Positions 29,466-61,168 of a stretch of DNA of 64,000 nt are shown here, one piece after another (the stretch's first letter is position 1; each line of letters begins with the position of its first letter). The stretch is from sequence record LT960552.1; one strand, 5' to 3'. Under the pieces are notes generated by a model. The model saw only the letters and a program-made list of their open reading frames with translations. It was not told the origin of the DNA and searched no databases. Made by a program: the position numbers and the translations under genes.

Positions 29466-29584
29466 CGGGAATTGGTGTAATGGCAGCACAACGTTATAAC
29501 ATAAATTCTTGTAGTAGAATTTCACAGCAACCAAAACAATTGCATAGGGAGCCGTGAGATAAGGTTCGATTCCTTGATTCCCGA
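29466..29584 (+). ncRNA. interrupted tRNA-like RNA, ACAGCA family
   Basis: Acceptor, D and T arms with insert AAATTCT/AGAATTT hairpin + ACAGCAA. Confidence 0.75.
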
Positions 29585-29807
29585 CTAAATAATGTTAATG
29601 ATGCTCACACGTAGAAATACGTAGTGGGCTTTTTCTTTTTATGGAGTTTGATAATGAAAATAACAAGATTATATAAAACTGTAGGATATGTTGCAATCAC
29701 ACTATTTAAAAATAATCCACAATATGGCGGTCAGTGTAGTACGTGTGGAAGATATGATAATGATGGTGGTCCATTATGTGGGAATGTCTTTTGTCCAGGA
29801 GGAAACT

Positions 29808-30436
29808 AATGAATCCTAATGATTTTAATAGTTCCGAAAAATATACATGGTGCTATACTATGTCTGATCTTCGTGATATGTATGACTGTTTAAAACTTGT
29901 TGATGAACGTTTTATTACTGAATATGGTTGGGCTTTACCTAATGATATTAAAGTTGGTGATACTTTTATTATTGAGGATCACAATACTGAACACGGAGTA
30001 AAACTTCTGAATAGTTTTACTATTCCATATCAATATATCGCCTGCTTTCACGCTAACATTTAAGGGTAGTTATATGAATTTTATCAGAGAAATGAAGTAC
30101 AACCAAAATAATTCATTATATGATTTTAAAACACATGTGCACAATAATAATTTTGTAAATTTTCGTGTTATTGTTGGTGGACAGGACGCATTTTACGTAA
30201 CGTATAGATTTGACACAGATACAATTGATTATATTTCATTACGTTCATATGAAGGAAGTAAATTCATCAATAATGTTACATCTATTATTGAAAGTAAAGA
30301 AATATATGAAACCGAAAAACTAACTCAACCATTTTTAACATATTTTAGTTACGAAAATATTTGTGAATTTTGTTGTTGGGTTTCCGAGGCAGTTATAAAA
30401 TCGGAGAATGAAAATGCACTTTCTAATAATGGATAA
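29808..30436 (+). other. two hypothetical genes
   Basis: ORFs with SD sites. Confidence 0.7.
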
Positions 30437-31202
30437 GTACTTTAATGAAGAAGGTTTCCGTGTAATGAAAAATTACATGGTACAAAATAATATCTCTCAC
30501 ACTTCGGTAAAACCAGTTCCAGTACTGAATATATTTGTTCCAGAAGGTGTAGAAGATTATTCCGATGCTTCATATGATAAGTACTTTGATAAATCAGTAC
30601 CTACTATGTCATTTGGTAGCTATGCATTAGCTAACCAATTAGTTAAAGAAGGATATACTCCTGGTGGGTATATTAATGAGAACTTTAATATTAAAGTTCA
30701 AATGGAAAATTGGGGATTGAATAACTTCCTTAATGGTACAGCTATATTTGGCACTTTAGAGAATATGACTGCACCAGATTGGAAACGTATCTTCATTCGT
30801 CCAGTACATGATACTAAACAAATGTTAGCTACTGTTATAGAAAAAGAAAACTTTAACTATTCTTTAGAACTATTCCGTTATGGTAAAGAACAAGGATTTG
30901 AAATTATGATTTCTGAGTTCAAAGAAATTAAAGCTGAGTTTCGTTTGTTTATTGTTAAAGGTAAAGTAGTAGCACATTCTTTATATAAATTGAATGGTAC
31001 TGTTTGTATTTCCCCTAATGTACCTGATGAAATTATTACTAAAGCAGAAGAATTAAGTACTATTTGGACTCCTGCTGAAGCATTTGTAATGGATTTTGCA
31101 GAAACTGTTGACGGATTTAAAGTACTTGAAGTTAATAACATAAACTGTGCTGGATTCTATGCATGTGATATTCCTTCAATTGTTGAGGCATTTATAAAAT
31201 GA
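30429..31202 (+). CDS. ATP-grasp domain protein (DUF4343-like), second copy
   Basis: FIRPVHDTK, EFRLFIVKGKVVAHSLY, FVMDFAETVDGFKVLEVNNIN. Confidence 0.8.
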   Translation: MDKYFNEEGFRVMKNYMVQNNISHTSVKPVPVLNIFVPEGVEDYSDASYDKYFDKSVPTMSFGSYALANQLVKEGYTPGGYINENFNIKVQMENWGLNNFLNGTAIFGTLENMTAPDWKRIFIRPVHDTKQMLATVIEKENFNYSLELFRYGKEQGFEIMISEFKEIKAEFRLFIVKGKVVAHSLYKLNGTVCISPNVPDEIITKAEELSTIWTPAEAFVMDFAETVDGFKVLEVNNINCAGFYACDIPSIVEAFIK

Positions 31203-31558
31203 AAAATCATTTGAACGAGTACTTTGAAGGATTAGATAATCTCATATTTTAATTTTATGAAACTATAAATCAAAATATTAGTTCAAAAAAAATAACTATT
31301 AAAATGACTTTTTTATATAATAAGCATATAAATTTTCATTATAATATTGAAAATGACGAATTAGTTATAGAAGATTTTGTTGATAAAATAAAATTAAAAT
31401 ATCCAAATTTCTCAAAACTTTAAGATGAAGCTTATCATTTTCAAAAAATGACAGTATGGCCTCATATTAGTTTTGAATGTACTGAAGTTGAGAAATTTAT
31501 GATTGAAATTGAAAGGATTAAAAATGAAACCGAATTTGCCCCAAGAGCCAAATCCTAA
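31199..31558 (+). pseudogene. degraded member of the EE-x-x-FQ paralog family
   Basis: In-frame TAA at 31250 and 31421; retains DEAYHFQKMT. Confidence 0.6.
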
Positions 31559-33840
31559 TTTAATTGAAAGTATGTGTATGCGTTATGACCATTCTCATGG
31601 TATCCGTTCCCCACGGTTCAATAATAATACTTTTGAAATAGAAACGGAAGAAGAGTTTGAACAAAGACAGGATTCTAACCGTAGAATGATGCGTAAACTA
31701 TATGAAGAAGTTTCGGGGTATGGATTCTATCAATATACAAAGGATGATAGTACTGATGAATGAAGCAGCTAGAAAACAATTGCATGATATAGCAGACAAC
31801 GCATGTTATATATACACTACTATTATCAGAGAAAGAATTAAGTATTCAAAGTTTAGTAATGTTAGTATTCAAATTGACAATGCTATTCAATTTACTAATA
31901 CACCAGATAAATTTGAAATGTGGATTAAATTTGGTAAGCATACTTTTATATACAGTGAAGATAGCGTAATCTATCGATATTGGGATAGAAAAAAATCTGA
32001 CAAATTTATATATGATGTAATTGAATTGCCTAATATTAACAAATTTATTTTTTCTGAAGAATATTATTTTCAGCAAAGTACTTTATTTGATTTCAAGTAT
32101 TTCGAACTAGAAGATTTAAAAGCGTTAGATACAATTCGTAAAAAAGTACAACAACAATGGTCGGATCAACTTTTAAATTGGTAATATTATGATAACACGA
32201 TATGAATTAATTGATGGTGAAATAGTACCTCACGAATTTGGTGAATATGTAAAATTCACTGATTATAAACAAGCTGAAGATGCCAGAAGTAAAGCTGTAT
32301 CAGATGCGGGTTGGGCAGCAGACGCAGCTAGAGAACAAAATGAAATTAATAGATATAAGGATTGGAACTAATGAGTACTAAAGTAATACTTAATGTTTGT
32401 AATTCTGATTTAGAATATTCACATTCTGCATGGGATGGAGCTGAAATTTCAATATATAGAATCAATGAAGTTCTTAAAGAACGTGGTATTGATATTCAAT
32501 TTTATTTAGAAACACATGAAGAAGATGAATATCCTGATAAGTTTTGGAATGAATCAAATCCAGAATATAATCCAACTGGTATTGAGATTGAAGAACATGA
32601 ATAATGAAAATCTAAAAGATGATTTATCAAGTGAATTCAGTGCATATATTGCTGAATTAAGTATAACTGATGATATTAAACATTCTAAAATTTATATATA
32701 TTGGCATTATATGGTAGGCGAATATTGTATTGAAATTAATAATAAATGGTCAGGGTATGTTCCTGAAGAATTTATATTTAAATCAGGGTTTGATAATTAT
32801 ATTCGTTGGTCAAAATATTGGGAAAAATATAGAACAGATGAATGTTTTATGGGACTATATCGTAAATTCGCTCAATCATTTGATAAATTTTTCTTGTTGG
32901 ATCACAGTAATGATAGTGAATTAGATGGTCATATGAATATGTTTTTATATATTATTAATACAAATTCAATTCCAATCGAATATCGAAAAATGATACTAAG
33001 TAGAGTAATTGAAGTATTAACTACACGTATGTATTATAATTATGCAGAAATTGTAAAATCAGCTTTGGAAGAACTTGATGGAATACAAGAAAATATCAGA
33101 AGTAGTAAAAAAGTTTAATGCTAAATTTGATGGATTATTTAAAACAGTTAATCGTGGAGATTATTGTTATTTTAAAATAAATGATTTTTTCACTATAAAA
33201 TGTGGAAATGATATGGTTGTACAATTTAAATATATGCCAAATAGTCAAGATTATTATTATATGAATTATGATTATAATAATGATTCTGTTATGTTCTATA
33301 CAACGAGAAAATATAGTGGTCATTGGAAACATTCAGCACCTGATAATATCGTAATATTTAAGAACTTAACAAGGTTATGTACAGAGGAAGGACATTTTCA
33401 GGAAATGACCAGACAGGACTTGACTGATTTTGAAATTTCTGATATAATTTCTTTATTATTGATGGGTAAGACCATAGTTGATAAAACGAAGGAATATCGA
33501 AATGTCTGAACATGCTTCACCACAATTGATAAATGTTTCTATTAAGCATGGTGACGTTATTGATATTGAACATACTTGTGTTGACCGTCGAGAGCATATT
33601 AGTGTTTTTGTAAGTCATTCTACTATTCATAACGGAAGGGGTGTTGCTATTTTTCATGATAATGATGGAAAAGTTTATCTATGGAAACCTTCAGACAAAT
33701 GTCCTCATGGTATAATTGAACGAGTTGATAGTCCAAATAAAGACTTTTTGGTGAATCCATATGTGAGAATTTACTGTCCTGATGTGGATAAATTTAGACC
33801 AGTGGATTCGTTTTCTGGTTCATATTTAATAACGAAGTAA
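31524..33840 (+). other. block of small hypothetical genes (31524, 31756, 32189, 32371, 32597, 33078, 33502)
   Basis: Contiguous ORFs. Confidence 0.7.
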
Positions 33841-33854
33841 CAGGGGAATTTGAA

Positions 33855-34256
33855 ATGGAAAAGCCAGTACTAAAATATAAATGTTATATTCTATTACGAG
33901 AAGATCTTGAAATGCCACAAGGTAAGTTTGCAGTACAAGTGGGGCATGGAATTGACCAAGCGTGGAGTAAGTATTTGGAATATAAAAATAGTTCAAATAC
34001 TAATGATATAATTGCTGTGTCTAATTTTGAAGATTGGGTATCTGAGGGACGCCGGAAGATTGTATTACGTCTTAAAGATGAAGATCATATGAATAAAATT
34101 AAAGAAAAGATACAATCTAATAGTACTGAACCATATTTTGTTCATGATATTTTTGATTATGGCTTTAATTTCTTTGATGGTTTAACTCAAACGGGTTTAA
34201 TCATTTATCCAACTCAATGTGAAATTTCTGCTGTAAAAAGGTTACGTTGTTGGTAA
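33855..34256 (+). CDS. peptidyl-tRNA hydrolase, Pth2 type
   Basis: ILLREDLEMPQGKFAVQVGHG, WVSEGRRKIVL, DGLTQTGLII. Confidence 0.8.
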   Translation: MEKPVLKYKCYILLREDLEMPQGKFAVQVGHGIDQAWSKYLEYKNSSNTNDIIAVSNFEDWVSEGRRKIVLRLKDEDHMNKIKEKIQSNSTEPYFVHDIFDYGFNFFDGLTQTGLIIYPTQCEISAVKRLRCW

Positions 34257-34261
34257 AAATA

Positions 34262-34290
34262 TGAAACAGAAATAAAATTTGTGGTATAAT
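34262..34290 (+). promoter_or_regulatory. TGAAAC-N14-TGGTATAAT promoter
   Basis: Upstream of tRNA-Leu. Confidence 0.8.
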
Positions 34291-34304
34291 ATAAATATAA
34301 CAAA

Positions 34305-34386
34305 GGGGATATGATGTAACTGGTAGCCATAAGGGTCTTAGAATCCCTCGCCTTCGGGCGTGAGAGTTCGAATCTCTCTATCCCCA
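34305..34386 (+). tRNA. tRNA-Leu(TAG)
   Basis: Loop CTTAGAA, V arm; ends A-CGA. Confidence 0.9.
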
Positions 34387-34587
34387 CGAAAGTAAATTCA
34401 GTACCCCGCTCAATGATGGTCTGAATTGTTCGAGTGCAAAAGCACAGTAGAGTCATACGTGACTCTCGCCCTTTTTGATTCATTTGGTAATTCATTATTT
34501 TGCTTGACAGTATATCATCTTTGTGTGATAATATATGTACAAGCTTTAAAGCTGCTTGATGCAGCTTTTTTTATTTCTGGAGAAAAC

Positions 34588-37741: not shown

Positions 37742-37765
37742 ATTTTAATTAAATGAGGATACCTT

Positions 37766-42240: not shown

Positions 42241-42316
42241 GCCTTTGTAGCTCAGTGGTTAGAGCGGGAATCTCTAAAATTCTTTGTCGTCGGTTCGAGT
42301 CCGACCATCGGCACCA
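42241..42316 (+). tRNA. amber suppressor tRNA (anticodon CTA)
   Basis: 76 nt; stem GGAAT/ATTCT, loop CTCTAAA; canonical D and T arms; CCA encoded; two acceptor mismatches. Confidence 0.8.
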
Positions 42317-47638: not shown

Positions 47639-47752
47639 GCAGTGATCGTCTAGAGGCTTAGGACACGAAAAGCGATTCTTGATTAAGAATCTTACGGCAT
47701 CCACAACTTTCATTCAACGAACGTAACGCAGGTTCGAATCCTGCTCACTGCA
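47639..47752 (+). ncRNA. interrupted tRNA-Glu-like RNA, ACAGCA family
   Basis: Glu-type D arm and TAAC V loop; insert GATTCTT/AAGAATC + ACGGCA; CTTTCAT loop. Confidence 0.8.
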
Positions 47753-48461: not shown

Positions 48462-48587
48462 GTGGGGTTAGCTCAGTTTGGTAGAGCAGCGAAAGAAACC
48501 AAAATGGAATCTTGAAAAGGATTCTAACAGCATTATATCTTCTACTGTAAATTCGCGGGTCGGTGTGTTCAAATCCACCACCCCACA
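48462..48587 (+). ncRNA. interrupted tRNA-like RNA with GTA loop, ACAGCA family
   Basis: GCGAA...insert...CTGTAAA-TTCGC. Confidence 0.8.
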
Positions 48588-48742: not shown

Positions 48743-49105
48743 ATGAAAGTATATATTGATGACATTCGCGATCCAAAAAAGTACTTGACACCAGAACAGG
48801 CCGATGGTATTGTATGGATTAAAGAAGCATGGAATGCACGTAACTTTTTAGTTGAACATGAATCCGTGATTGAAGTACTTCATCTTGATAATTACCTTGA
48901 TGATGAATTCATTACCGGAACAGATATATTCTTTATGGTTGCAGGTGAAACCATATGGGGTGATCGGTCAGAATGGGCTAATCTTAAAACAATTTATTTG
49001 CATTCATCAGATACTGATGTAATTGAAAAGTTGATGAAATATAAAGATGAGCTTCAAACAGCAGGGGTTGAATTAATTGACAACCACCAAGAAAGGAACT
49101 ACTAA
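48743..49105 (+). CDS. cyclic-phosphate-processing receiver-domain protein
   Basis: KVYIDDIRDP, LHLDNYL, IYLHSSD. Confidence 0.7.
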   Translation: MKVYIDDIRDPKKYLTPEQADGIVWIKEAWNARNFLVEHESVIEVLHLDNYLDDEFITGTDIFFMVAGETIWGDRSEWANLKTIYLHSSDTDVIEKLMKYKDELQTAGVELIDNHQERNY

Positions 49106-49465
49106 ATGAAAGTTTACGTAGATGATATTCGTAATCCAGCTAACCATCTCAGTACTGAACAGGCTGAAGGTATTATTTGGATTAAAGAGTGGTGGGAAGC
49201 ACGTAACTTCATTTTGAAGAATGGATTAGATATTGAAGTATTGCACTTTGATAATTTTTTAGGTGATCCAAATCGTCGAACTGGTGGTGATATTCTAAGT
49301 TCAGTAATGTATCGTTTAAAACGTGGTAAATTTCCTAATTTGAAACAAATTTATTTACATAGTTCAGATAAAGAAGTAATTGATAAATTATATGATTCAT
49401 TTATTGAACATTGTAATGAATATGGAATTGAGTTAATAAAAAATTCACGTCCAAATCGTAGTTAA
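49106..49465 (+). CDS. cyclic-phosphate-processing receiver-domain protein, tandem paralog
   Basis: KVYVDDIRNP, LHFDNFLGD, IYLHSSD. Confidence 0.7.
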   Translation: MKVYVDDIRNPANHLSTEQAEGIIWIKEWWEARNFILKNGLDIEVLHFDNFLGDPNRRTGGDILSSVMYRLKRGKFPNLKQIYLHSSDKEVIDKLYDSFIEHCNEYGIELIKNSRPNRS

Positions 49466-49471: not shown

Positions 49472-49592
49472 GGCGAGTTAGCTCAGTGGTAGAGCACGTA
49501 GAAACCAAGGATTCTAGTACTAGATTCCCGCAGCAACAATAACTCATACTATGATAAAGTCGTGGTCGGGGGTTCAAATCCCTCACTCGCCG
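49472..49592 (+). ncRNA. interrupted tRNA-like RNA with CAT loop, ACAGCA family
   Basis: Insert GGATTCT-AGTACT-AGATTCC + GCAGCAA; CTCATAC. Confidence 0.8.
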
Positions 49593-51837: not shown

Positions 51838-51900
51838 GTGTATATGTTCAGTAATGAACTAAACCGTTGTTAAACTATAAATTACCTTTTGGGTGAAAAA

Positions 51901-53514
51901 ATGAAAAAAACTTTATTAGCGTTATCTATTGTAGTAGCATCAATGACTGCATTTAACGCAACCGCAGCAGTCTCTTTAAAATCATCAGGCGACCAATTTG
52001 GTCCGGCTATGTCTGATTTACTGAATTCAAATGAAAACGGTAACTGGAATCAGCAACGATTCATGAACACGTTCAATAATCGCTTTAATGGTACTGAAGC
52101 AGAAGCATTAGCATTGTTTAATGCTGTAAAAGGTGGTAATGTTCCAACATCACTTGATAGCTTTAATAGTACTTTACCATCTTCAGGTGGCACTGTCACT
52201 AAAGGTGATAAGGGCGACAAAGGTGACAAAGGCGAAAATGGTGCAGATGGTGCAGATGGTGCAGATGGTGCAGATGGTACAAAAGTATCATTAACTCCAG
52301 ATGGTACTATTACATTGGATGATGGTAAAGGTGGAACCGTTCAACAAGATTTGGCTACACAAGCTGAATTAAATCAAGAACGTTATAAACTTGAACAAAA
52401 AGATAAAGAACACGATGTTACTCTTACTGATCATGAAACTCGTTTAGATACAGTCGAAAATATGACGAATGGTTTAAATGTCGTTGTAGGGACTAATAAA
52501 CAAGATATCGAAGAATTAAAAGACGGTAAAGCAGACAAAAAAGATCTGGATAAAGAAGTTGCAGATCGTGATGCTGGTGATAAAGTACTAGATTCTAAAA
52601 TTGATAATGTAGTATCAAATCAATCAAGTACTGATGCTGCACAAAATGCCGCCATTGATAGTAAAGTAGATAAAACTACACAAGCAGCGAAAGATTCAGC
52701 TCAAGATACTGCTATTGGTAATAAAGTTGACAAAAGTCAATATAATACTGATAAAGTAATTCAGGGTATTCATGATGCTGCACAAGACAATGCAATTATC
52801 GGACTGGCAGTAACAAAAGCAGACAAAAAAGATCTGGATAAAGAAGTAGCTGACCGTAAAACCGCAGATAATAAATTGCAATCAAATATTGACAATGAAG
52901 CAAATGTGCGTAATAATGCAGATGTTGCATTGAAAAACAATATTGATAAAAATAAAGCTGACCAACTTGGTGTTGATACTGCACAAAATGCCGTTATTGA
53001 TACTAAAGCAAGTAAGCAAGATTTAAACACTGAAGTTGATGAACGTAAAGTAGCTGATAAAAAGTTGCAGAAAAACATTGACAATGAAGCAAATGTACGT
53101 AATAATGCAGACCAAGTTCTTAGTTCTCGCATTGATACAAATAGTACTACTTTAGTACAACACGACCAACGTATTACAAGTAACACACAACGTGTTGGTG
53201 TAGTTGAAAATCGTGTAACTAATTTAGAACAAAGTACTAATCGTCGGTTTACAGAATTAAAAAGTACTGTAGATGATAACCGTAAAGTTGCAAGTGCTGG
53301 TATTGCTGGTGCAGGTGCAATGGCAAATATTCCACAAGTATCGCAAAATAGTACTTTCTCTGTCGGTGCTGGTATTGGTGGTTATGATAGTGAGCAAGCA
53401 GTTGCTGTAGGATTCTCTGCTCGTATTAACAACAACATTGTAACTAAGGTTGCTGTAAGTACAAATACACAATCCGAGTTGTTATGGGGTGCTGGTGTAG
53501 GCGTAGAATGGTAA
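51901..53514 (+). CDS. YadA-type trimeric autotransporter with collagen-like and coiled-coil repeats
   Basis: Signal peptide; GXY repeats; C-terminal ASAGIAGAGAMANIP...VGAGIGGYDSEQAVAVG...GVGVEW anchor. Confidence 0.85.
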   Translation: MKKTLLALSIVVASMTAFNATAAVSLKSSGDQFGPAMSDLLNSNENGNWNQQRFMNTFNNRFNGTEAEALALFNAVKGGNVPTSLDSFNSTLPSSGGTVTKGDKGDKGDKGENGADGADGADGADGTKVSLTPDGTITLDDGKGGTVQQDLATQAELNQERYKLEQKDKEHDVTLTDHETRLDTVENMTNGLNVVVGTNKQDIEELKDGKADKKDLDKEVADRDAGDKVLDSKIDNVVSNQSSTDAAQNAAIDSKVDKTTQAAKDSAQDTAIGNKVDKSQYNTDKVIQGIHDAAQDNAIIGLAVTKADKKDLDKEVADRKTADNKLQSNIDNEANVRNNADVALKNNIDKNKADQLGVDTAQNAVIDTKASKQDLNTEVDERKVADKKLQKNIDNEANVRNNADQVLSSRIDTNSTTLVQHDQRITSNTQRVGVVENRVTNLEQSTNRRFTELKSTVDDNRKVASAGIAGAGAMANIPQVSQNSTFSVGAGIGGYDSEQAVAVGFSARINNNIVTKVAVSTNTQSELLWGAGVGVEW

Positions 53515-54089: not shown

Positions 54090-54097
54090 AAAATAGC

Positions 54098-54126
54098 TTG
54101 ACATGATGATTTGAATTTGATATAAT
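54098..54126 (+). promoter_or_regulatory. sigma70-type promoter
   Basis: TTGACA-N17-TATAAT. Confidence 0.85.
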
Positions 54127-54211
54127 GTATATCACATCGACGGATGATAAACGTAACTCTGGTACTTATGATTAAGTACTTTTTTGAAAATAAAATATAA
54201 GGGCTTTATAA

Positions 54212-55216
54212 ATGGCTAAGAACACAATTACTGATATTGGCGAAGTTGAACGTACTGTGAATTATATCAAGTTCCAGATCTCTCAAGCTGACGAGCAGCT
54301 TGCACCATTCGCTAACAGCGATAAGCCAAAGATTTGCTATGCACATCTGTTGGAGTGGAAAAAGCAGTTGCAATCTGAACTGTATGAAATCCGTCAGGCT
54401 CAGCAGAAAGCACGTCATAACAATCCACACAAGTAATAAGCCATGCCGCCAGCATTGTTGGCGGCGTCTTTTAAGTGATAACAAGAGTATATTATAATGA
54501 AAAGTGCAACAGCGTTAAAAAATATGAATCAGCGTATTCAAACATTACGTTCTCAACTGGATTTAGCTTGGTCAGATTGGAGTAAGTTAAATAGTATTGA
54601 GACTAAAACCAAAGATGAATCAAAAGATCTATCTAAAATTTCAGGTTTTATTAGTAAATTAAATTATGAAATTCGCGGTTTGGAATTGTCTTTTAATGAA
54701 TTGAAAAAACAAGTCATTGATGAAATCATTTTGTCTTAATAAAAAATGGGGTTAGTTATGGGTGTGATAGTTATTTACTGTATATTAGGTTCCCTTGGTT
54801 TATTCACATTGTATATGTTTGTAGTAACATCTGCAATGGGGACAGAACGACTTAAAACTTCTCAGTACTTTATGTCTTCATTGAGTTATTGTGAAGAAGC
54901 AACAACTAAAATTAATTTGTTGATTGATAAGTATGAAGCAGGGCTTATTAAAGCAAAATTAAAAAATAATGTAATTGAATTTACTGAAATGGAAAAAAAT
55001 ATTCCAGCAGGTGAAATCTGGATAGCAAATAAATATTTTTCATATGGTCAGTTACATCGTTATGGTGCGAATGGAAATATCTCTTGGCAATGTAATAAAC
55101 CAAGTTTAAAAACTTTTAAACGAATTATTAAACTTGAAAAACAGCTAAACGTTGCTCATCAAGAACCAGTACCGAAAAGTGCAAAATCAACAGATGAGCC
55201 TGTAATTTTGGACTAA
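54212..55216 (+). other. three hypothetical genes (54212, 54497, 54746)
   Basis: ORFs. Confidence 0.7.
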
Positions 55217-55320
55217 GGGCGTAATTGCCCTATTTTAATTAAGAGATTTAAAATATACATTTGAGAACTTCATGGTATGGGAAAAGTAGTGAATTTCTTT
55301 CAAATGTTATCGTAAATATT

Positions 55321-55349
55321 TGAAACAACTAAAAAAATTGTGGTATAAT
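55321..55349 (+). promoter_or_regulatory. TGAAAC-N14-TGGTATAAT promoter
   Basis: Upstream of a permuted RNA. Confidence 0.8.
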
Positions 55350-55366
55350 ATAGTACATAAGGCAAC

Positions 55367-55482
55367 GGAATCTTACAGCAAAAATACTAATTTTGATGAA
55401 AACGAAACGACGAGGTTCGAATCCTCACCCACGAATTGCCTTATTATTAGTGGGAGCATGGTGCTGGATAAACAAAGATTCC
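55367..55482 (+). ncRNA. circularly permuted tRNA-like (YrlA-like) RNA, ACAGCA family
   Basis: GGAATCT/AGATTCC; T arm precedes CCCAC/GTGGG helix and D-like arm. Confidence 0.75.
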
Positions 55483-55503
55483 AAAATTTAAGTTAGAAAA
55501 ATA

Positions 55504-55532
55504 TGAAACAAATCAAAAATTTGTGGTATAAT
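55504..55532 (+). promoter_or_regulatory. TGAAAC-N14-TGGTATAAT promoter
   Basis: Motif match. Confidence 0.8.
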
Positions 55533-55539
55533 ATAAGAA

Positions 55540-55652
55540 GTAAAGCGGGATGGTGATTGATGAAAGCTGTTATTTGATTCTAGACAATCATAATAAGCGA
55601 GTAATAGAACAGGGTTCTTAATATCACATGGGTTCAAATCCCTGTCGCTGCA
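55540..55652 (+). ncRNA. degenerate tRNA-like RNA
   Basis: T loop GGTTCAAATCC and bulged acceptor; no anticodon arm. Confidence 0.4.
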
Positions 55653-55665
55653 CAAAAGCAACAAA

Positions 55666-55784
55666 TGAAATCTTACAGCAAACACAACATTTTTTCCTTG
55701 CATAGAAAAACGGTGGGGTTCGATTCCCCAACATCCAAGTTGCTTTTTAGGATGTGTCTGGACGACCGTATGACACAGATTTCA
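55666..55784 (+). ncRNA. circularly permuted tRNA-like RNA, ACAGCA family
   Basis: TGAAATCT/AGATTTCA; CGGT/ACCG; T arm; ACATCC/GGATGT. Confidence 0.75.
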
Positions 55785-55789
55785 GTACT

Positions 55790-55864
55790 GTTCCGTTAGA
55801 CAAATTGGTATAGTCACCACACTTTCAATGTGGATTTCTGAGGGTTCAAGTCCCTCACGGAACG
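55790..55864 (+). tRNA. tRNA-Glu(TTC)
   Basis: Loop CTTTCAA; ends G-CTA. Confidence 0.88.
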
Positions 55865-55868
55865 CTAA

Positions 55869-55983
55869 AGGATTCGTACAGCAACAATAAACTCTTAAAA
55901 TTCAATTGGTGAAAACAACCTTGCAGTTCGATTCTGCTTCCACAATGCGTGGATCTGGTGGTGGATAGAAAAAACCGAATCCT
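55869..55983 (+). ncRNA. circularly permuted tRNA-like RNA, ACAGCA family
   Basis: AGGATTCG/CGAATCCT; GCAG-TTCGATT-CTGC; TCCAC/GTGGA. Confidence 0.7.
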
Positions 55984-56021
55984 GATTTTAATTAAGAAGT
56001 ACTAAAGAATTTGATACACAC

Positions 56022-56174
56022 GGATTTATACAGCAAACATAATCCTAAAATAAAACATACGATAATGTTATTAACTCGGAATTCGTTCCTTTCGTTAGTA
56101 CTTGGCAACTTGGGTACTTAAATAAGTTGTATCACCTCATGTGTATCGGATTAGTGGTGATTATAAATAAATCC
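56022..56174 (+). ncRNA. ACAGCA-family RNA with divergent interior
   Basis: GGATTTA-T-ACAGCAA...TAAATCC. Confidence 0.6.
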
Positions 56175-56210
56175 AGTAAATCAAAAGTACCTTTATCGGT
56201 ACTTTTTTAT

Positions 56211-56303
56211 GGAAGATTGGCAGAGTTTGGTTTATTGCACAGGTCTTGAGTACCTGCGGGGGTTAATAGCCCTCCGTGAGTTCGAATCTCACATCTTCCT
56301 CCA
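56211..56303 (+). tRNA. tRNA-Ser(TGA)
   Basis: Loop CTTGAGT, long V arm, CCA encoded. Confidence 0.85.
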
Positions 56304-56321
56304 AATTTTATGTAGTACAAT

Positions 56322-56397
56322 GGGGTACGTAGCTCAGTCTGGTAGAGCAGCCATGCGAAAACGGTGTGTCGGTGGTTCGAATCCACTCGCTCCCCAC
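56322..56397 (+). tRNA. degenerate tRNA-Phe(GAA)-like
   Basis: Canonical D and T arms; mismatched acceptor; anticodon arm one nt short. Confidence 0.5.
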
Positions 56398-56400
56398 TAA

Positions 56401-56457
56401 GGAATCTAGCAGCAACCATAACCCAATCAAACTTTTAATTTGACAATTATGGATTCC
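56401..56457 (+). ncRNA. minimal ACAGCA-family RNA displaying a Lys(TTT) anticodon stem-loop
   Basis: GGAATCT/GGATTCC; TCAAA-CTTTTAA-TTTGA. Confidence 0.7.
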
Positions 56458-56480
56458 AGTTATTTTAAGTTGAGAATAGC

Positions 56481-56885
56481 ATGACGGATAACGAAAAACT
56501 TGAAAATATATTAATTGAAGCATTGACAATAATTAATACTTCAACATATAATTTTGAATCGTCCAAAGACGATTCAAAATCTAGATTTGTCTTATGCGGT
56601 AAAAGAGCACAACTTAAGTTGTACTTTTCTGCCAAATATGGTGAATTAAGTATAGAATTTATTCATCACTTGATTGGAGATACCCTATCATTTCAGATTA
56701 ATTATTATGATGATTCGGACGAAGATGATGATTACCATAATTTATATGGTGAAATACGTATTCCAAGAACTGAAGAACAATACTTTCAGTACTACACAAT
56801 TCAAGATCATGTTTTCTCTTTAGAGTTTTATAAATTATTAGAAAACATAATGAACGAATTATTGGTAAAGTGGCAGAGCGGCTGA
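56481..56885 (+). CDS. hypothetical protein, EE-x-x-FQ family
   Basis: TEEQYFQYYT; 3' end overlaps tRNA-Ser. Confidence 0.7.
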   Translation: MTDNEKLENILIEALTIINTSTYNFESSKDDSKSRFVLCGKRAQLKLYFSAKYGELSIEFIHHLIGDTLSFQINYYDDSDEDDDYHNLYGEIRIPRTEEQYFQYYTIQDHVFSLEFYKLLENIMNELLVKWQSG

Positions 56886-56954
56886 ATGCAACCGCTTGGA
56901 AAGCGGTCAGGTTAGGTGATACTAGCCTCGTAGGTTCAAATCCTATCTTTACCG
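56864..56954 (+). tRNA. tRNA-Ser(GGA)
   Basis: Loop TTGGAAA, long V arm; ends G-CAA. Confidence 0.92.
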
Positions 56955-57004
56955 CAAAAGTAATAACCTCCTTATTAAAGAATACATACCCATAGGAGAA
57001 TATT

Positions 57005-57361
57005 ATGTACGAGAAAGATGATGGTCCATTAACAGATGAACAATTGTGTATTATTCGTGAAATGAATAGTCATTTAGAACAATCTAATTTAAGTATAGAC
57101 TTGGATTGGTTAAATAGTGAAAAACAAGGAAATGCAATGTATTACGACTACTATTACAAAATTGATGGTGAACTTCGTCGTCATACCAGTAATCAAGAGT
57201 TAACTGATGCGGAAATCAATAATATTTTTGGTGCAAGCAAACATGTGGTAATGCTTACTCCAATTGTTTTTGAACGTGAGATTAGTACGGAAGATAAGTC
57301 TGGTAATAAAATTAAAAGTACTGAAAAAGTACACGTAGGATTTTTAGGTTACGTGGAATAA
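57005..57361 (+). CDS. hypothetical protein
   Basis: GGAG SD; terminator 57373-57393. Confidence 0.7.
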   Translation: MYEKDDGPLTDEQLCIIREMNSHLEQSNLSIDLDWLNSEKQGNAMYYDYYYKIDGELRRHTSNQELTDAEINNIFGASKHVVMLTPIVFEREISTEDKSGNKIKSTEKVHVGFLGYVE

Positions 57362-57406
57362 TATAATTTATTGGATTCGAAAGAATCCTTTTTAAGTGAG
57401 ATGATT

Positions 57407-57631
57407 ATGGATAATCAACATAAAAAGATTAAAGGGTATCGTGACCTTTCTCAAAAAGAAATCGATGCAATGAATGAAATTAAACAACTAGCAGCTACTG
57501 TTGAAGAGTTAATTGAAAAACTTGAAGGAACTGACTCTATTGATAAACGCTGGCTTGCTATTGCAAAAACAGATTTACAAAAAGGGTTCATGTCAGCAGT
57601 GCGAAGCGTGGCTAAACCAGATTCCTTTTGA
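57407..57631 (+). CDS. acb2: anti-CBASS cyclic-oligonucleotide sponge Acb2
   Basis: [20 protein letters not shown]...[27 protein letters not shown] closely matches Acb2/T4 Vs.4 family as recalled. Confidence 0.88.
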
Positions 57632-57639
57632 GGAAAATA

Positions 57640-58020
57640 ATGCATACAATTGATAACCATGCTGATATAATTGATGATGTTATAACTGAAATACTTGAAA
57701 TTTATACGTGTAAAGTTGAAGTTTATAATTATGGTAATTTGTTTTCACAGCACGGCTATAGTACTAAACATAATATAAATTATCATATAAATGCAAAGTA
57801 CTATAATAATAATTCAAAAAATGGTAGACGAGCTAATAGTCTTGTGATAGAATTTAAATTCACTAACAGAGTTCCTAAAGGACTAAAAGATTATTATAGA
57901 TTATCAATACCTGAAATACAAAGTATTACAGAAGAACGACATTTTCAATTAATGTTAGTTACTGATGATATGTACTTGGATTATGAAGTTATAAATAAAT
58001 TACGTACACATATTATGTAA
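57640..58020 (+). CDS. hypothetical protein, EE-x-x-FQ family
   Basis: TEERHFQL. Confidence 0.7.
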   Translation: MHTIDNHADIIDDVITEILEIYTCKVEVYNYGNLFSQHGYSTKHNINYHINAKYYNNNSKNGRRANSLVIEFKFTNRVPKGLKDYYRLSIPEIQSITEERHFQLMLVTDDMYLDYEVINKLRTHIM

Positions 58021-58029
58021 AAAAGTTTT

Positions 58030-58083
58030 TAGAATCTAACAGCAATCAAAACTCATTGGATATATGAAAAAAAATAGATTCTA
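58030..58083 (+). ncRNA. minimal ACAGCA-family RNA (GAT-centred loop)
   Basis: TAGAATCT/AGATTCTA; TCAT-TGGATAT-ATGA. Confidence 0.65.
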
Positions 58084-58088
58084 GTATT

Positions 58089-58160
58089 TGGGAATTATCT
58101 CAGCGGTAGAGAGCACAACTGATAATTGTGAGGTCACTGGTTCAAATCCAGTATTCCCAA
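58089..58160 (+). tRNA. tRNA-Ile(GAT)
   Basis: Loop CTGATAA; ends A-CTA. Confidence 0.88.
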
Positions 58161-58259
58161 CTAAGTAGTTCAGTACTGAAATATGTACAGTGAAATTATT
58201 CAACACTATAGGTAGAACTTTGAATGAATCAGTAAGCCTATAAGTAACTATATTAAATT

Positions 58260-58390
58260 TGGAATTCAACAGCAATCTTCACTTACTAAAAACAGCTACC
58301 TCACGGTTTGTAGGTTCGAGTCCTACCTTGTACTTTCGAGTACATGTGGTGAAATCGGTAAACACGGCTGTCCAAAAGAAATGAATTCCA
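58260..58390 (+). ncRNA. circularly permuted tRNA-Leu-like RNA, ACAGCA family
   Basis: TGGAATTCA/TGAATTCCA; T arm, TGTACT-TTCG-AGTACA, Leu-type D arm. Confidence 0.85.
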
Positions 58391-58443
58391 GTATTAATTA
58401 AGACATAAATATTCTTATACATTATTTTTGTAGGAATATAGAT

Positions 58444-59043
58444 ATGGAAATGAAAAAGTTGATGGAAGAGATATCTTCCATAATGGAAGGACAATTACCA
58501 GGATATTATTATCACGGTAGCTCTAGACCAATATCAAATTTCAGTGATGAGTTTGTGGGTAGAGGTAATGATGAATATGGTCCAGGTATATATTTTAGTT
58601 CTGCACCAAATACTTCAATAGGTTATGCAAAAGATGGTGGTTCTAATGGAATGGTATATCAATGCGAACTGAATTTAAGAAAAGAACTATCTAAAAAAAC
58701 TAAAATTAATAAAGCAGTACTATTTAAATTAATACAAAATACACCTGATGAAGATGCTTATACTAACTGGAATGAAAATAAAAATGTTGCTTATAGAACA
58801 GCATTACAGGGTTACATCGATGAAGGAAATATGTACGATGCATTAATGGGTGTTTGGTACGATTGGTATCGGGAGTATCCTGTTCAATTCGTAAGATCAT
58901 TAGTACAATTAGGATATGACGGATACATATATACTTTTGGAAGCGGTGAACGTTTTATAATAGTATATAATCCAGCAAGTATTAAAGTTATAAACACTTT
59001 CAATCCAGAAGAAGCTAAGCAGAAACTACTTGGAAGTGATTAA
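58444..59043 (+). CDS. putative ADP-ribosyltransferase-fold protein
   Basis: YYHGS...YGPGIYFSSAPNTSIGYA motif. Confidence 0.5.
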   Translation: MEMKKLMEEISSIMEGQLPGYYYHGSSRPISNFSDEFVGRGNDEYGPGIYFSSAPNTSIGYAKDGGSNGMVYQCELNLRKELSKKTKINKAVLFKLIQNTPDEDAYTNWNENKNVAYRTALQGYIDEGNMYDALMGVWYDWYREYPVQFVRSLVQLGYDGYIYTFGSGERFIIVYNPASIKVINTFNPEEAKQKLLGSD

Positions 59044-59049
59044 AAAATT

Positions 59050-59169
59050 TGGAATTCAACAGCAAATCATTCAAAACACGTAGCATGTCGTAGGTTCAAG
59101 TCCTACCAGTACTTAATTGTACTGTAGCTCAGTCGGGAGAGCAGCCACCTTAAAAAGAAATGAATTCCA
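59050..59169 (+). ncRNA. circularly permuted tRNA-like RNA, ACAGCA family
   Basis: TGGAATTCA/TGAATTCCA; T arm, CAGTAC/GTACTG, D arm TAGCTCAGTCGGGAGAGC. Confidence 0.85.
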
Positions 59170-59326
59170 GTATTAATTACAAAGAGAACCAATAATGTAC
59201 ACTAATATTTTTGATATATTAAAAGATTTAACAGTGTTTGGAAAAGTAACATATCCAGTAAAATAAAATAATTAGGTTATTTCGAAGTTCTAAAACAACG
59301 AAACATTTACTAACGTAAAAAGAATT

Positions 59327-59385
59327 TGGAATCTATCAGCAACCATAACCCAATCAAACATTTAATTTGACAATTATGGATTCCA
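59327..59385 (+). ncRNA. minimal ACAGCA-family RNA, near-copy of 56401-56457
   Basis: TCAAA-CATTTAA-TTTGA. Confidence 0.7.
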
Positions 59386-59407
59386 GCCTATTTTTTGGAG
59401 TACAAAA

Positions 59408-59674
59408 ATGTATTATGCTCGGTTAGAACATCCTGATAATGGATATGAAATTGAAAGAATACATCTTAAAACCTTAGATTGTGAAAAGTACTATCCAGTA
59501 TATTCAATTAATATTGGAAGTTGGAGTACCAGTGTATATCTTAGAGATGATGAGTATGAATATAATAGTGTAAACTTTGAGTTCTACATCAAAAATGGAG
59601 ATGAATATATTCTCGAAGATATTTTCTCAGACCCTGATTTAAATCCGTACTTGATAGAAGACGATGAAGAATAA
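59408..59674 (+). CDS. hypothetical protein
   Basis: GGAG SD. Confidence 0.7.
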   Translation: MYYARLEHPDNGYEIERIHLKTLDCEKYYPVYSINIGSWSTSVYLRDDEYEYNSVNFEFYIKNGDEYILEDIFSDPDLNPYLIEDDEE

Positions 59675-59688
59675 ATATCACAAATAAA

Positions 59689-59717
59689 TGAAACGATTAA
59701 AAAATTTGTGGTATAAT
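59689..59717 (+). promoter_or_regulatory. TGAAAC-N14-TGGTATAAT promoter
   Basis: Upstream of tRNA-Asn. Confidence 0.8.
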
Positions 59718-59740
59718 ATAAGTAAGAAAAACAACAAGAT

Positions 59741-59813
59741 GGTTACGTAGCTCAGTGGTTAGAGCGTTCGCCTGTTAAGCGAGTGGTCGCTGGTTCAAAT
59801 CCAGCCGTGATCG
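59741..59813 (+). tRNA. tRNA-Asn(GTT)
   Basis: Loop CTGTTAA; ends G-CAA. Confidence 0.92.
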
Positions 59814-59861
59814 CAAATTGATGTTTGGTATGGTTTAAAAATATAATAACCAAACATTATA

Positions 59862-59904
59862 AAGAATCTTTCAGCATTAACACGGTGAAAATATATAGAT
59901 TCTT
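59862..59904 (+). ncRNA. minimal ACAGCA-family RNA
   Basis: AAGAATCT-T-TCAGCA...AGATTCTT. Confidence 0.55.
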
Positions 59905-59908
59905 GATT

Positions 59909-59985
59909 AGGAGATTAGCATAGATGGCCTAATGCACCGGTCTTTGAAATCGGTATCGGTGGTTCGAATCCACCATCTCCTGCCA
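59909..59985 (+). tRNA. tRNA-Gln(TTG)
   Basis: Loop CTTTGAA, CCA encoded. Confidence 0.9.
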
Positions 59986-60004
59986 ATTTAAGTAGAATAA
60001 TAGT

Positions 60005-60427
60005 ATGAAGTTATGTAAGAGATGTAATCAGAATAAGCCATTAGAAGCTTTTTCAAAAAATAAATCCAAAAAAGACGGATTACAAGTGAGTTGTAAGGAA
60101 TGTTTTAAAACAATAAACAACAATTCATATAAAAATGAATCTGGTGAACGTCGAAGAAAAGTTGGCGAGACTCGTGATAGAATTAAAGCTATTAATAGAT
60201 CGATTATATCAGAACATCGATCAGTAAATCCATGTCACTTTTGTGGAGAAACCGAACATTGTTGTTTAGACTTTCATCACTTAGACCCTACTGTCAAAGA
60301 TAAAGAAATATCTGTGTTGGTACATTATAGTACTGCTAGATTGGTAAAGGAAATAGCTAAATGTATAGTTATTTGCTCAAATTGTCACCGGAAACACCAT
60401 GCTGGTATTGAAGGTTACGAATTATAA
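60005..60427 (+). mobile_element. HNH-type endonuclease
   Basis: CKRC...CKEC; CHFCGE...LDFHHLDP...CIVICSNCHRKHH. Confidence 0.85.
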
Positions 60428-60568
60428 AGTTTTCATTTCCTTGGTGAAAACAAGCTGGCATGATTCCCCCTGCTTGTAAAATTATCGAACGGGAACCGCG
60501 TAGCACCGGTACAGGTCAGATTGTAAAGATCAAGTATGTACAGTACTGAGAGCGGCAGTACAAAAAAT

Positions 60569-60650
60569 GCGGGATTAGCTCAGTGGTAGAGCACTTGCCT
60601 TCCAAGCAAGAGGCGAATAGGTTCCATCGGTTCGAATCCGATATTCCGCT
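60569..60650 (+). tRNA. tRNA-Gly(TCC) with expanded variable region
   Basis: Loop CTTCCAA; 15-nt V region; ends T-CAA. Confidence 0.82.
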
Positions 60651-60769
60651 CAAATTAAACAAACAATAAGGTAAATCCTATGATGCTATAGAAAAACAGT
60701 ACTGGTCCTCCTGATAACTTTAATTCAGAACAAAACACTAAATTAAATATTATCCAAAAGGAACATACT

Positions 60770-61096
60770 ATGTTAAACAAAGAAAAATATATTACTGTAA
60801 AAAATACTTGGAAATTAGAAAAAGAGCATAACATTTTCGACCATGTGGTTTATAATGTTATTCGTGGCCTACCATCAGATAATGGGTTTGCACCAATTAC
60901 TGATAAAGGAAAACTTCAAGCAAATAATAACGACCCGTATAATATGTACAACTATGCAGTTCTTGAATTGCATTATGAGTTGAATGAAAAACGATACAAT
61001 TATGAAAAAACAGTACAACATTATTCTAAACTATTTGGCATTGAATTTACACCTGAACTTATCGAAGTAGTACTTACTTTGATTAAAGTTAAATAA
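60770..61096 (+). CDS. hypothetical protein
   Basis: AAGGA SD. Confidence 0.75.
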   Translation: MLNKEKYITVKNTWKLEKEHNIFDHVVYNVIRGLPSDNGFAPITDKGKLQANNNDPYNMYNYAVLELHYELNEKRYNYEKTVQHYSKLFGIEFTPELIEVVLTLIKVK

Positions 61097-61104
61097 CAGA
61101 ATTA

Positions 61105-61168
61105 AAGAATCCAACAGCACCCATAAATGAAATCAACTGTTAATTGAAAAATTCAAAAATGGATTCTT
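61105..61168 (+). ncRNA. minimal ACAGCA-family RNA displaying an Asn(GTT) anticodon stem-loop
   Basis: AAGAATCC/GGATTCTT; TCAA-CTGTTAA-TTGA. Confidence 0.7.

Follow-up and report, generated by a model that had tools for sequence, protein, structure and literature searches.

Genes for transfer RNAs (tRNAs) that are circularly permuted or interrupted by introns are found in the red alga Cyanidioschyzon and in some archaea. In the bacterial Y RNA YrlA (RF02553) the two ends form a stem around an internal tRNA mimic with the order T arm, closed acceptor, D arm; this stem carries the protein-binding site, with the motif GNCGAAN0-1G near the 5' end as the presumed Rsr contact, and the Y RNA gene lies beside rsr (PMC4201824). 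The Class I RNAs of social amoebae, reported to be unique to Dictyostelia and bound by the RRM protein Rnp1A, are 42-65 nucleotides (nt) long and have a stem of 6 base pairs (bp) joining their ends, an otherwise variable sequence, a conserved 3' CUGU and, beside the 5' strand, the 11-nt motif CCUUACAGCAA, in which U3, C6, C9, A10 and A11 are almost invariant (PMC7919456). Here we describe a family of RNAs present in 15 copies in a 64,000-nt stretch of DNA (the window), which is 100% identical to Yersinia phage fHe-Yen9-03 (LT960552.1; 352,596 bp), a Rak2-like jumbo myovirus (Eneladusvirus); window position equals record position minus 248,000. The window spans most of the tRNA cluster of this phage, with 20 tRNAs called by ARAGORN and 22 by Rfam, all on the plus strand.

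We demonstrate the RNA family itself, its structure, its conservation and its gene neighbourhood, and show by structure prediction that the protein encoded beside it in other phages has the fold of Ro60. Our favoured reading, held with moderate confidence, is that these are Y-RNA-type RNAs in which a handle made of a stem and CAGCAA most likely binds the Ro60-like DUF2828 protein (g179 in fHe-Yen9-03) and the variable insert is a payload; the arrangement of RNAs and DUF2828 genes mirrors that of Y RNAs and rsr (PMC4201824). An initial annotation, made from the letters of the window, had proposed a Y-RNA-like or tRNA-decoy system whose RNAs might be baits for anticodon nucleases or tethers for a Ro60/RNA-repair complex. 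The Y-RNA-like, tethering part of that proposal has gained strong, if indirect, support from the Ro60 fold of g179, the repair genes and the adjacency in six lineages, with the amendment that the partner is likely to be a DUF2828 paralogue of Ro60 and not a Pfam TROVE protein. The Ro60/Y-RNA principle was right in substance, with a different motif, a different protein family and some copies that are not derived from tRNA.

A closing stem and CAGCAA motif in fifteen copies

All 15 copies listed in the initial annotation are present, on the plus strand and within the tRNA cluster (Table 1). The pattern RAWTYNNNCAGCA occurs 17 times in the window where 1.5 occurrences are expected, and its two matches outside the copies (47051, 53403 on the minus strand) fall within coding regions and are not accompanied by a partner strand. 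Motif and perfect partner helix of at least 7 bp together give 14 matches in the window, where 100 dinucleotide shuffles yield 0.97 on average and 3 at most; this strict test passes over copy 47639, which has a CGGCA variant that is conserved in Serratia phage BF and Pectobacterium phage CBB, and copy 49472, which has one U-U mismatch in its helix. The closing helix is 7-11 bp long across the copies, a wider range than the 7-9 bp first given, and the compensatory changes described with it are borne out by a set of 68 distinct copies from six genomes, normalised to one register and a 9-bp helix. In this set 93.6% of cells are paired against 75.8% after shuffling, a percentage inflated because the copy finder demanded pairing; the double-sided changes, seen in seven of the nine helix pairs, are not so inflated, and the covariation score (0.499 against 0.186) was matched by none of 500 shuffles and collapses once the partners are slid.

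The motif stands in a fixed register, CAGCA beginning 2-3 nt past the helix. Its C6, G8, C9 and A10 are invariant among the 68 distinct copies, and A7 is kept in at least 90% of them. Next to the 5' strand the phage consensus reads UCU(A/U)ACAGCAA and often continues UYAAAAC; the opposite strand, ahead of the 3' arm, is A-rich, as had been noted, and usually closes with AAU. The 3' arm is followed by Y-W-G-U, with the G in 70 and the U in 50 of 71 open copies. Because this module frames hairpins, loops and non-tRNA inserts as well as tRNA bodies, the common denominator of the family is the stem with CAGCAA and not the tRNA.

The three topologies that had been distinguished are present as described. 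Type i (29466, 47639, 48462 and 49472) is a tRNA body in normal order whose anticodon loop is replaced by the A-rich strand, a hairpin, CAGCA and a spacer, and these copies are labelled tRNA-Pseudo or Undet in GenBank. Type ii (55367, 55666, 55869, 58260 and 59050) runs from the 5' arm with CAGCAA through T arm, acceptor 3' strand, linker, acceptor 5' strand and D arm to the 3' arm, with a linker of 4 nt to about 150 nt among orthologues; ARAGORN classes 58260 and 59050 as tRNAs with an intron once their order has been un-permuted in silico. Type iii (56401, 58030, 59327 and 61105) and the 43-nt copy 59862 hold a small hairpin or loop only, and the insert of 56022 is not tRNA-like. Two corrections follow. 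The lone anticodon stem-loop ascribed to type iii is better termed a variable distal hairpin, given the different loop sequences of its orthologues (CUUUUAA, CUUUUAC, CCUAACC, CAUUUAA), and the description of the whole family as tRNA-derived does not fit, because five or six of the 15 copies have no tRNA part.

Several copies carry structure of their own. Copy 55367 has its own extended -10 promoter (55320-55349), and its leader, AUAAGGCAA, pairs with the linker that closes the acceptor; the leader of 55666, AAAAGCAAC, likewise pairs with the linker. This complementarity extends over 9 bp in each case (55357-55366 with 55432-55441, and 55654-55662 with 55743-55751), shows a compensatory A-U to G-C change in Xanthomonas phage XbC2 and Erwinia phage Kaldavass, and may form a pseudoknot stacked on the closing stem. 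The anticodon stem kept by copy 58260, GCUGU/ACAGC, has a covarying counterpart, GCUAU/AUAGC, in CBB. Orthologues were located for 29466 (BF 11144, CBB 6549-6669), 59862 (CBB 33533, GAP32 4241, XbC2 6213; all in region numbering) and 56022 (BF, CBB, Cronobacter phage GAP32, XbC2, Salmonella phage Munch and IMG/VR contigs). A tRNA-like gene at 56323-56395 (+), annotated as tRNA-Ser and scoring 36 bits with the Rfam tRNA model, has no proper anticodon arm; the module has apparently been lost here in the Yersinia phage, because the CBB counterpart (32662-32780, region numbering) is a 119-nt type i copy. A degenerate, unannotated tRNA-like RNA at 55540-55660 (+), with a T arm GGGTTCAAATCCC, weak acceptor pairing and no CAGCA, lies directly behind a promoter at 55503-55532 and ahead of copy 55666.

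Copies abut tRNAs by 3-5 nt or precede small open reading frames (ORFs), and no terminators were found between copies. Directly 3' of the 3' arm, GUAUUAAUUAA recurs in many copies and genomes (for example 58391-58403 and 59170-59182) and may mark a site of processing or belong to a phage promoter. A terminator-like hairpin at 57373-57388 (+), GGATTCGAAAGAATCC with a T run, has the helix sequence of the family's closing stem and no CAGCA.

Occurrence in other phages and linkage to DUF2828

The motif is present, as the initial annotation had anticipated for related phages, in several genera of jumbo phages and in further phage lineages. In the related phages each scanned genome region contains 13-19 copies, all of them within the tRNA cluster and on the coding strand; the carriers are Serratia BF, the Erwinia SNUABM phages, Pectobacterium CBB, Cronobacter GAP32, Xanthomonas XbC2 and Erwinia Kaldavass, with Salmonella phage Munch and its relatives and several IMG/VR contigs in addition. 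Identity of copy 55367 between genera is 84-98%, although the proteins that CBB has in common with its Rak2-like relatives, GAP32 included, make up only 33-38% of its total (PMC5259590). A BLAST search with the type iii consensus unexpectedly matched Listeria phage A511, which has three tandem copies with unrelated stems (GGAAUC, GAGAGC and GGAAGC), a shared UAACAGCAAUUACUA and an end in CUGU; all three are conserved in 54 of 54 Pecentumvirus records. Copies also occur in Enterococcus, Campylobacter, Bacillus, Mycobacterium and Felix-O1-like phages, the overall tally being 2-16 per genome or region examined. Stems are wholly different by lineage, with GACCGU, AGAACC, AUGGUACU, UGGACACA and UAGACAC in addition to the three of A511, and CAGCAA and the 3' G are constant throughout.

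In phage records the copies are unannotated or mislabelled as pseudo-tRNAs or tiny ORFs; three such ORFs that overlie copies, F367_017 (1846-1983), Phi87_09 (3785-3961) and MsGreen gp55 (3149-3241; region numbering), are probably spurious gene calls. No Rfam family, YrlA included, reached its gathering threshold on any copy tested, and the literature searched on permuted phage tRNAs, on jumbo-phage RNAs resembling tRNA, on Class I RNA in connection with bacteriophages and on DUF2828 yielded no prior description. A first pattern scan of IMG/VR with a 15-mer gave matches that were mostly due to chance.

In six lineages the RNA copies adjoin a DUF2828 gene on the same strand (Table 1), and 54 of 54 Listeria phage records with the RNA cluster fall in the group that holds DUF2828. 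The corresponding protein of phage BF, BF_0180, has 508 amino acids with DUF2828 and DUF7788 domains and is encoded two genes downstream of an RNA ligase gene; its orthologue in fHe-Yen9-03 is g179, which lies outside the window and is 92% identical. A sequence search of the PDB with BF_0180 gave no match, and fold comparison alone succeeded: for the predicted structure (predicted local distance difference test score, pLDDT, 89; predicted template modelling score, pTM, 0.88) the 12 best PDB matches are all structures of Ro60, Rsr or TROVE proteins, aligned along its entire length, with E values of 3e-9 to 5e-6 and template modelling (TM) scores of 0.41-0.59. The structural model thus shows that the DUF2828 protein has a Ro60 fold, a helical-repeat ring with a vWA domain. 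DUF2828 is found in 711 phage records, and the family also occurs in plants; depositors' names for its members include 'RNA-binding protein' and 'Ro-like RNA binding protein', and a literature search found no functional study.

The search for TROVE/Ro60 and RNA-ligase genes that the initial annotation had suggested therefore had a divided outcome: no Pfam TROVE match was found among window ORFs of at least 60 amino acids or the BF proteins tested, whereas a Ro60-fold DUF2828 protein and RNA ligases were. Elsewhere in its genome BF encodes Rnl1, Pnkp, RlaP, Thg1, a tyrosyl-tRNA synthetase (TyrRS), a CCA-adding enzyme and a second RNA ligase, and fHe-Yen9-03 is also reported to encode Rnl1, Pnkp, RlaP and a CCA-adding enzyme.

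According to the mechanism that we propose, the RNAs would be small, stable, non-coding molecules transcribed together with the phage tRNA cluster. Their ends would be freed by the enzymes that mature the neighbouring tRNAs (release by RNase P and the tRNA 3'-end enzymes is probable because copies abut tRNAs), and the closing stem would then protect them. Every copy would present the same handle, comprising the 7-11 bp stem, the single-stranded CAGCAA 2-3 nt later, the A-rich opposite strand and the 3' YWGU tail, which would most likely be bound by the DUF2828 protein, here g179. The payload, where there is one, is a hairpin, a different structured domain or a tRNA-like body (normally ordered or permuted), and would provide a second binding surface. 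By this means the tRNA-like versions may recruit enzymes that recognise tRNA, or tRNAs that are damaged, to the Ro-like protein and to a repair set of Rnl1, Pnkp, RlaP, cREC and the second RNA ligase, by analogy with the Y RNA that tethers Ro60 to PNPase. We infer a role in RNA surveillance or repair, or in counter-defence, during infection, which fits the surrounding genes.

Several observations weigh against this reading. In fHe-Yen9-03 g179 lies about 146 kb from the nearest RNA copy, and DUF2828 has no Pfam TROVE match. The adjacency survey covered about eight lineages picked by hand from the 711 records, and Vibrio phage 6E35-1b has no clear copy within 1.5 kb of its DUF2828 gene. Finally, the Rsr motif GNCGAAN0-1G is in no copy, (N)2-3 CAGCAA standing at its position.

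The work brings to light a widespread, multi-copy family of phage RNAs and offers a testable RNA partner for the large protein family DUF2828. It would carry the Ro60/Y-RNA principle over to many virulent phages, with Gram-negative, Gram-positive and actinobacterial hosts, and link it to phage gene sets for tRNA repair and counter-defence. The occurrence of normal, permuted and tRNA-free versions in one genome is a natural test of the parts that a Y-type RNA requires.

Table 1. Copies of the RNA family and genes associated with them. Positions for fHe-Yen9-03 are window positions; copies are named in the text by the start given in brackets where this differs by one.
Phage	Feature	Position	Strand	Details
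fHe-Yen9-03	Type i copy	29466..29584	+	GenBank tRNA-Pseudo-ATA; hairpin AAATTCT/AGAATTT (29503-29522) and CACAGCAA in place of anticodon loop
fHe-Yen9-03	Type i copy	47639..47752	+	GenBank tRNA-Pseudo-AAA; Rfam tRNA 38.6 bits; hairpin GATTCTT/AAGAATC (47674-47691) and UUACGGCA
fHe-Yen9-03	Type i copy	48462..48587	+	GenBank tRNA-Pseudo-GAA; hairpin TGGAATCTT-GAAA-AGGATTCTA and ACAGCA
fHe-Yen9-03	cREC_REC genes, tandem paralogues	48743-49102, 49106-49462	+	Between type i copies 48462 and 49472
fHe-Yen9-03	Type i copy	49472..49592	+	GenBank tRNA-Undet; Rfam tRNA 48.3 bits; GGATTCTAG/CTAGATTCC, one U-U mismatch, and CGCAGCAACAAUAA
fHe-Yen9-03	Type ii copy	55367..55482	+	Stem GGAATCTT/AAGATTCC, ACAGCAA, T arm, closed acceptor, mini D arm
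fHe-Yen9-03	Type ii copy	55666..55784	+	Stem TGAAATCT/AGATTTCA, UACAGCAA, extra hairpin, T arm, closed acceptor
fHe-Yen9-03	Type ii copy	55869..55983	+	Stem AGGATTCG/CGAATCCT, UACAGCAACAAUAAA, T arm, 5-nt-closed acceptor; 3 nt after tRNA-Glu
fHe-Yen9-03	Framed copy, non-tRNA insert	56022..56174	+	Stem GGATTTAT/ATAAATCC and ACAGCAA, 130-nt structured insert
fHe-Yen9-03	Type iii copy, 57 nt	56401..56457	+	Stem, AGCAGCAA, hairpin UCAAA-CUUUUAA-UUUGA; 5 nt after tRNA-like 56323-56395
fHe-Yen9-03	74-amino-acid ORF, Acb2/Tad1 hairpin domain (E 8e-20)	57407-57631	+	Within RNA cluster
fHe-Yen9-03	Type iii copy, 56 nt (58030)	58029..58084	+	UUAGAAUCUA-ACAGCAAUCAAAAC...AAAAU-AGAUUCUAG; 4 nt before tRNA-Ile
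fHe-Yen9-03	Type ii copy (58260)	58259..58391	+	Circularly permuted long-variable-arm tRNA body
fHe-Yen9-03	199-amino-acid ART-PolyVal ADP-ribosyltransferase (E 1.6e-11)	58444-59043	+	Between type ii copies 58260 and 59050
fHe-Yen9-03	Type ii copy (59050)	59049..59170	+	Circularly permuted tRNA body; canonical D arm and T arm; closed acceptor
fHe-Yen9-03	Type iii copy, 61 nt (59327)	59326..59386	+	Paralogue of 56401, with AUCAGCAA
fHe-Yen9-03	Minimal copy, 43 nt	59862..59904	+	Stem AAGAATCT/AGATTCTT, 27-nt loop starting UUCAGCA; 4 nt before tRNA-Gln
fHe-Yen9-03	Type iii copy, 64 nt	61105..61168	+	Hairpin UCAA-CUGUUAA-UUGA; UCAACUGUUAA segment also in dictyostelid Class I RNAs
Listeria A511	Three RNAs	End 35 nt upstream of gp57	Same strand	gp57 is a DUF2828 homologue, 31% identity, E 3e-79
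Enterococcus vB_EfaM_A2	Two RNAs	1461-1551 (with T arm), 1798-1861	Same strand	DUF2828 gene start 1986
Campylobacter F367	Two RNAs	1808-1871, 1880-1958	Same strand	DUF2828 gene start 1980
Bacillus PK-3	Three RNAs, among tRNAs	54-108, 780-888, 1335-1388	Same strand	DUF2828 gene start 1474
Mycobacterium MsGreen	Three RNAs	2948-2998, 3009-3136 (permuted tRNA-like body), 3150-3204	Same strand	DUF2828 gene end 2904
Felixounavirus UAB_Phi87	Two RNAs	3714-3780, 3881-3934	Same strand	DUF2828 gene end 3374

Relation to YrlA and Class I RNAs, and alternative explanations

The type ii copies share with YrlA an internal tRNA mimic of the same order framed by a stem made from the ends, a combination that the other ten copies of the window do not have, and both families are linked to RNA-repair genes. 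The gene on the same strand beside the phage RNAs in six other lineages encodes DUF2828, of Ro60 fold but with no Pfam TROVE match, and in fHe-Yen9-03 the distance to g179 is about 146 kb. Type ii-like copies match the YrlA model with E values of 2e-7 to 2e-5 (36.2 bits for 59050, at 59083-59145, over model positions 24-84; 39.3 bits, E 9e-6, for MsGreen and 45.1 bits, E 2e-7, for Enterococcus A2 with the full model), and these scores of 36-45 bits fall below the gathering score of 69. The phage family differs in its likely partner, a DUF2828 protein with the Ro60 fold in place of a TROVE-type Rsr, in copy number (up to 16 per genome against one to three for YrlA) and in having normal-order tRNA versions. 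The initial annotation had set the family beside YrlA and its Ro60/Rsr-binding stem; with GNCGAA missing and the YrlA scores below threshold, the module is not that stem.

The dictyostelid Class I RNAs, which the initial annotation had not brought up, are the closest to the phage family in sequence. Both have a short stem joining the ends, variable in sequence and with compensatory changes; the motif is CCUUACAGCAA in amoebae and UCU(A/U)ACAGCAA in phages, with U3, C6, C9, A10 and A11 kept in both; it often continues AUYAAAC, and an A-rich stretch precedes the 3' strand in both. The 3' end is CUGU in Class I RNAs and YWGU in phages, where the Listeria, Felix-O1-like and Campylobacter copies end exactly in CUG(U). 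Short forms measure 43-69 nt in phages and 42-65 nt in amoebae, and both families are multi-copy and clustered; in the window the type iii and minimal copies (43-64 nt, stems of 7-11 bp) have the terminal stem and shortness of RF01414, from which types i and ii depart. Individual parallels are found between asu_can_86, with CUUAACAGCAAUCAAA, and window copy 58030, between asu_can_2, ppa_can_13 and dla_can_88, with UCAACUGUUAA, and copy 61105, and between the T-arm-like GGUUCGAUCC inserts of asu_can_20 and ppa_can_99 and the type ii copies. A covariance model (R1) built solely from 46 dictyostelid RNAs of the published supplement, drawn from all groups, was searched against 268 kb of phage DNA. 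With it, 35 of 40 matches at E<=10 fell on phage copies, which make up 1.4% of the search space, at single E values of 0.0035-10, and four weak matches were obtained in 157 kb of BF and fHe-Yen9-03 sequence outside the cluster; copy 58030 was matched over its full length (15.0 bits, model positions 1-58). In the reverse test a sequence hidden Markov model of 36 phage copies matched 22 of the 46 amoeba RNAs, while 1,840 shuffled decoys gave no match. The likeness is unexpected and well supported, single scores being weak and the collective signal not.

Other features set the two apart. The best window match to RF01414 (Dicty_Class_I_RNA) is copy 55666 with 19 bits (19.9 bits with R1), the only Rfam matches of the A511 copies are to this family and reach 23.1 and 19.6 bits where the gathering score is 41.5, and three type iii copies give no RF01414 match at E<=10. 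In place of the DUSE promoter about 60 nt upstream of Class I RNAs, the phage copies are probably co-transcribed with tRNAs or lie behind a sigma-70-type extended -10 promoter. Phage stems are AU-rich and are longer than those of Class I, the carrier is a phage and not an amoeba, and the hairpin-closed (type i) and long tRNA-body forms are undescribed for amoebae. The amoeba partner is the RRM protein Rnp1A/CIBP, a Ro-like partner being unreported for Class I, and no RRM family was among the Pfam matches of window ORFs. The relation may be one of common descent, transfer or convergence. That the phage and Class I RNAs form a single family of Y-RNA-type partners of Ro60-fold DUF2828 proteins is a tentative proposal, to which we give slightly less than even weight. 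If it is true, Class I RNAs occur beyond the social amoebae and acquire both a candidate protein partner and a possible function, in the surveillance or repair of RNA, and their mechanism could be studied in a phage and its bacterial host. The amoeba family might then be derived from an RNA-protein pair of phages or bacteria, or that pair from the amoeba family, and the tRNA-fused and permuted forms would show that tRNA bodies were the origin of the family or are recruited to it repeatedly.

Other explanations would dispense with a Ro-like partner. The tRNA-like bodies and hairpins might be decoys that soak up host anticodon nucleases or other tRNA-directed defence enzymes, and the copies do lie amid counter-defence genes (the Acb2/Tad1-like sponge, ART-PolyVal and cREC). 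Attack on tRNA is evidently a pressure, because the phage carries the Rnl1/Pnkp tRNA-repair pair, and two hairpin loops equal the Lys and Asn anticodon loops of Escherichia coli. We nevertheless judge this unlikely: the hairpin loops vary between orthologues, the conserved part (stem and CAGCAA) does not resemble tRNA, several copies are devoid of tRNA features, and the anticodon arm is exactly what types i and ii are missing. A purely cis-acting role, in which terminal stems punctuate polycistronic tRNA and mRNA transcripts and protect their ends with no function in trans, draws on the close spacing to tRNAs or small ORFs and the lack of intervening terminators, but it seems quite improbable, since a bare stem needs no invariant CAGCAA and 3' G across phages of Actinobacteria, Firmicutes and Proteobacteria, the linkage to DUF2828 is left unexplained and one copy has its own promoter.

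It is also conceivable, if barely, that these are true tRNA genes, with a new kind of intron in type i and permutation in type ii, matured by the RNA ligases of the phage. Gene finders call type i and the un-permuted 58260 and 59050 intron-containing, and type ii resembles permuted tRNA genes in that the 3' half precedes the 5' half, a variable linker lies between them and a helix joins the outer ends. Unlike permuted tRNA genes, however, they have no visible bulge-helix-bulge, the module also occurs without a tRNA, and no canonical anticodon loop can be rebuilt: read directly, the flanks of 58260, 59050 and their orthologues form no 7-nt loop with U33 and purine 37, and the anticodons forced by ARAGORN (aaa, taa) show no conservation. 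Several copies and orthologues have degenerate acceptor and D arms, one orthologue that lost the module was left without an anticodon arm, five copies consist of the module alone, and the phage group already has a full canonical tRNA set. We give as little credence to ordinary membership of the YrlA family with binding by a TROVE-type Rsr; the shared topology of the tRNA-like domain and the significant, sub-threshold scores speak for it, and against it stand the scores themselves, the missing GNCGAAN0-1G (PMC4201824), the lack of a Pfam TROVE protein among those searched and the ten of 15 copies without a tRNA-like domain in YrlA order. The Y-RNA-type reading with a DUF2828 partner is the one that we retain.

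Neighbouring genes, rejected candidates and minor observations

The two cREC_REC products, directly downstream of which copy 49472 lies, are predicted to be cyclic-phosphate-processing receiver domains; the synteny of the pair is kept in BF, CBB and GAP32, and a review of jumbo phages ties the cREC domain to RNA ligases (PMC7824862). The Acb2/Tad1-like ORF is probably a cyclic-nucleotide sponge against CBASS or Thoeris. The ART-PolyVal ORF is kept in GAP32 and CBB, where it is annotated as 'hypothetical protein'.

A number of other identities were considered and set aside. Small self-cleaving ribozymes, suggested by the permuted topologies, are less probable, with no Rfam ribozyme match at E<=10 and no known catalytic core recognised. 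Some copies can be read as an Hfq (ARN)n site, AAC-AGC-AAC-AAU-AAA, but the 'N' positions are an invariant C, so the constraint on the motif is tighter than ARN. Pairing of CAGCA inside the RNA with a UGCUG partner works in single copies only, and the GCUGU of 58260 covaries with another partner. Readings at the level of DNA (GANTC methylation sites, or terminal repeats like those of miniature inverted-repeat transposable elements) leave the strand bias unexplained and fail on the compensatory changes outside the GAWUC core and on the unrelated stems of other phages. An RNase III site, a CRISPR-repeat mimic (Racr) and a ToxI mimic showed no evident likeness. For the T4 stable RNAs rnaC and rnaD, the latter with CACAGCAGAAAC, stem and register do not match, and the amoeba-only model gave one weak, unrelated match at the T4 locus.

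In Vibrio phage 6E35-1b (1464-1591, region numbering), UUAGACAUU-AUA-CAGCAAAC stands 37 nt before the DUF2828 start codon with its partner strand inside the coding sequence, and may be an autoregulatory copy of the handle or due to chance. In the window two R2K-clade ATP-grasp proteins (22534-23364 and 30408-31202), a TelA-like protein (3174-4310), an Rv2179c-like 3'-5' exoribonuclease (4701-5369) and an adhesin with YadA anchor and collagen repeats (51889-53514) are encoded, as are PTH2 and a nicotinamide mononucleotide (NMN) transporter. An amber suppressor tRNA with anticodon CUA at 42241-42316 (+) is also kept in BF and CBB.

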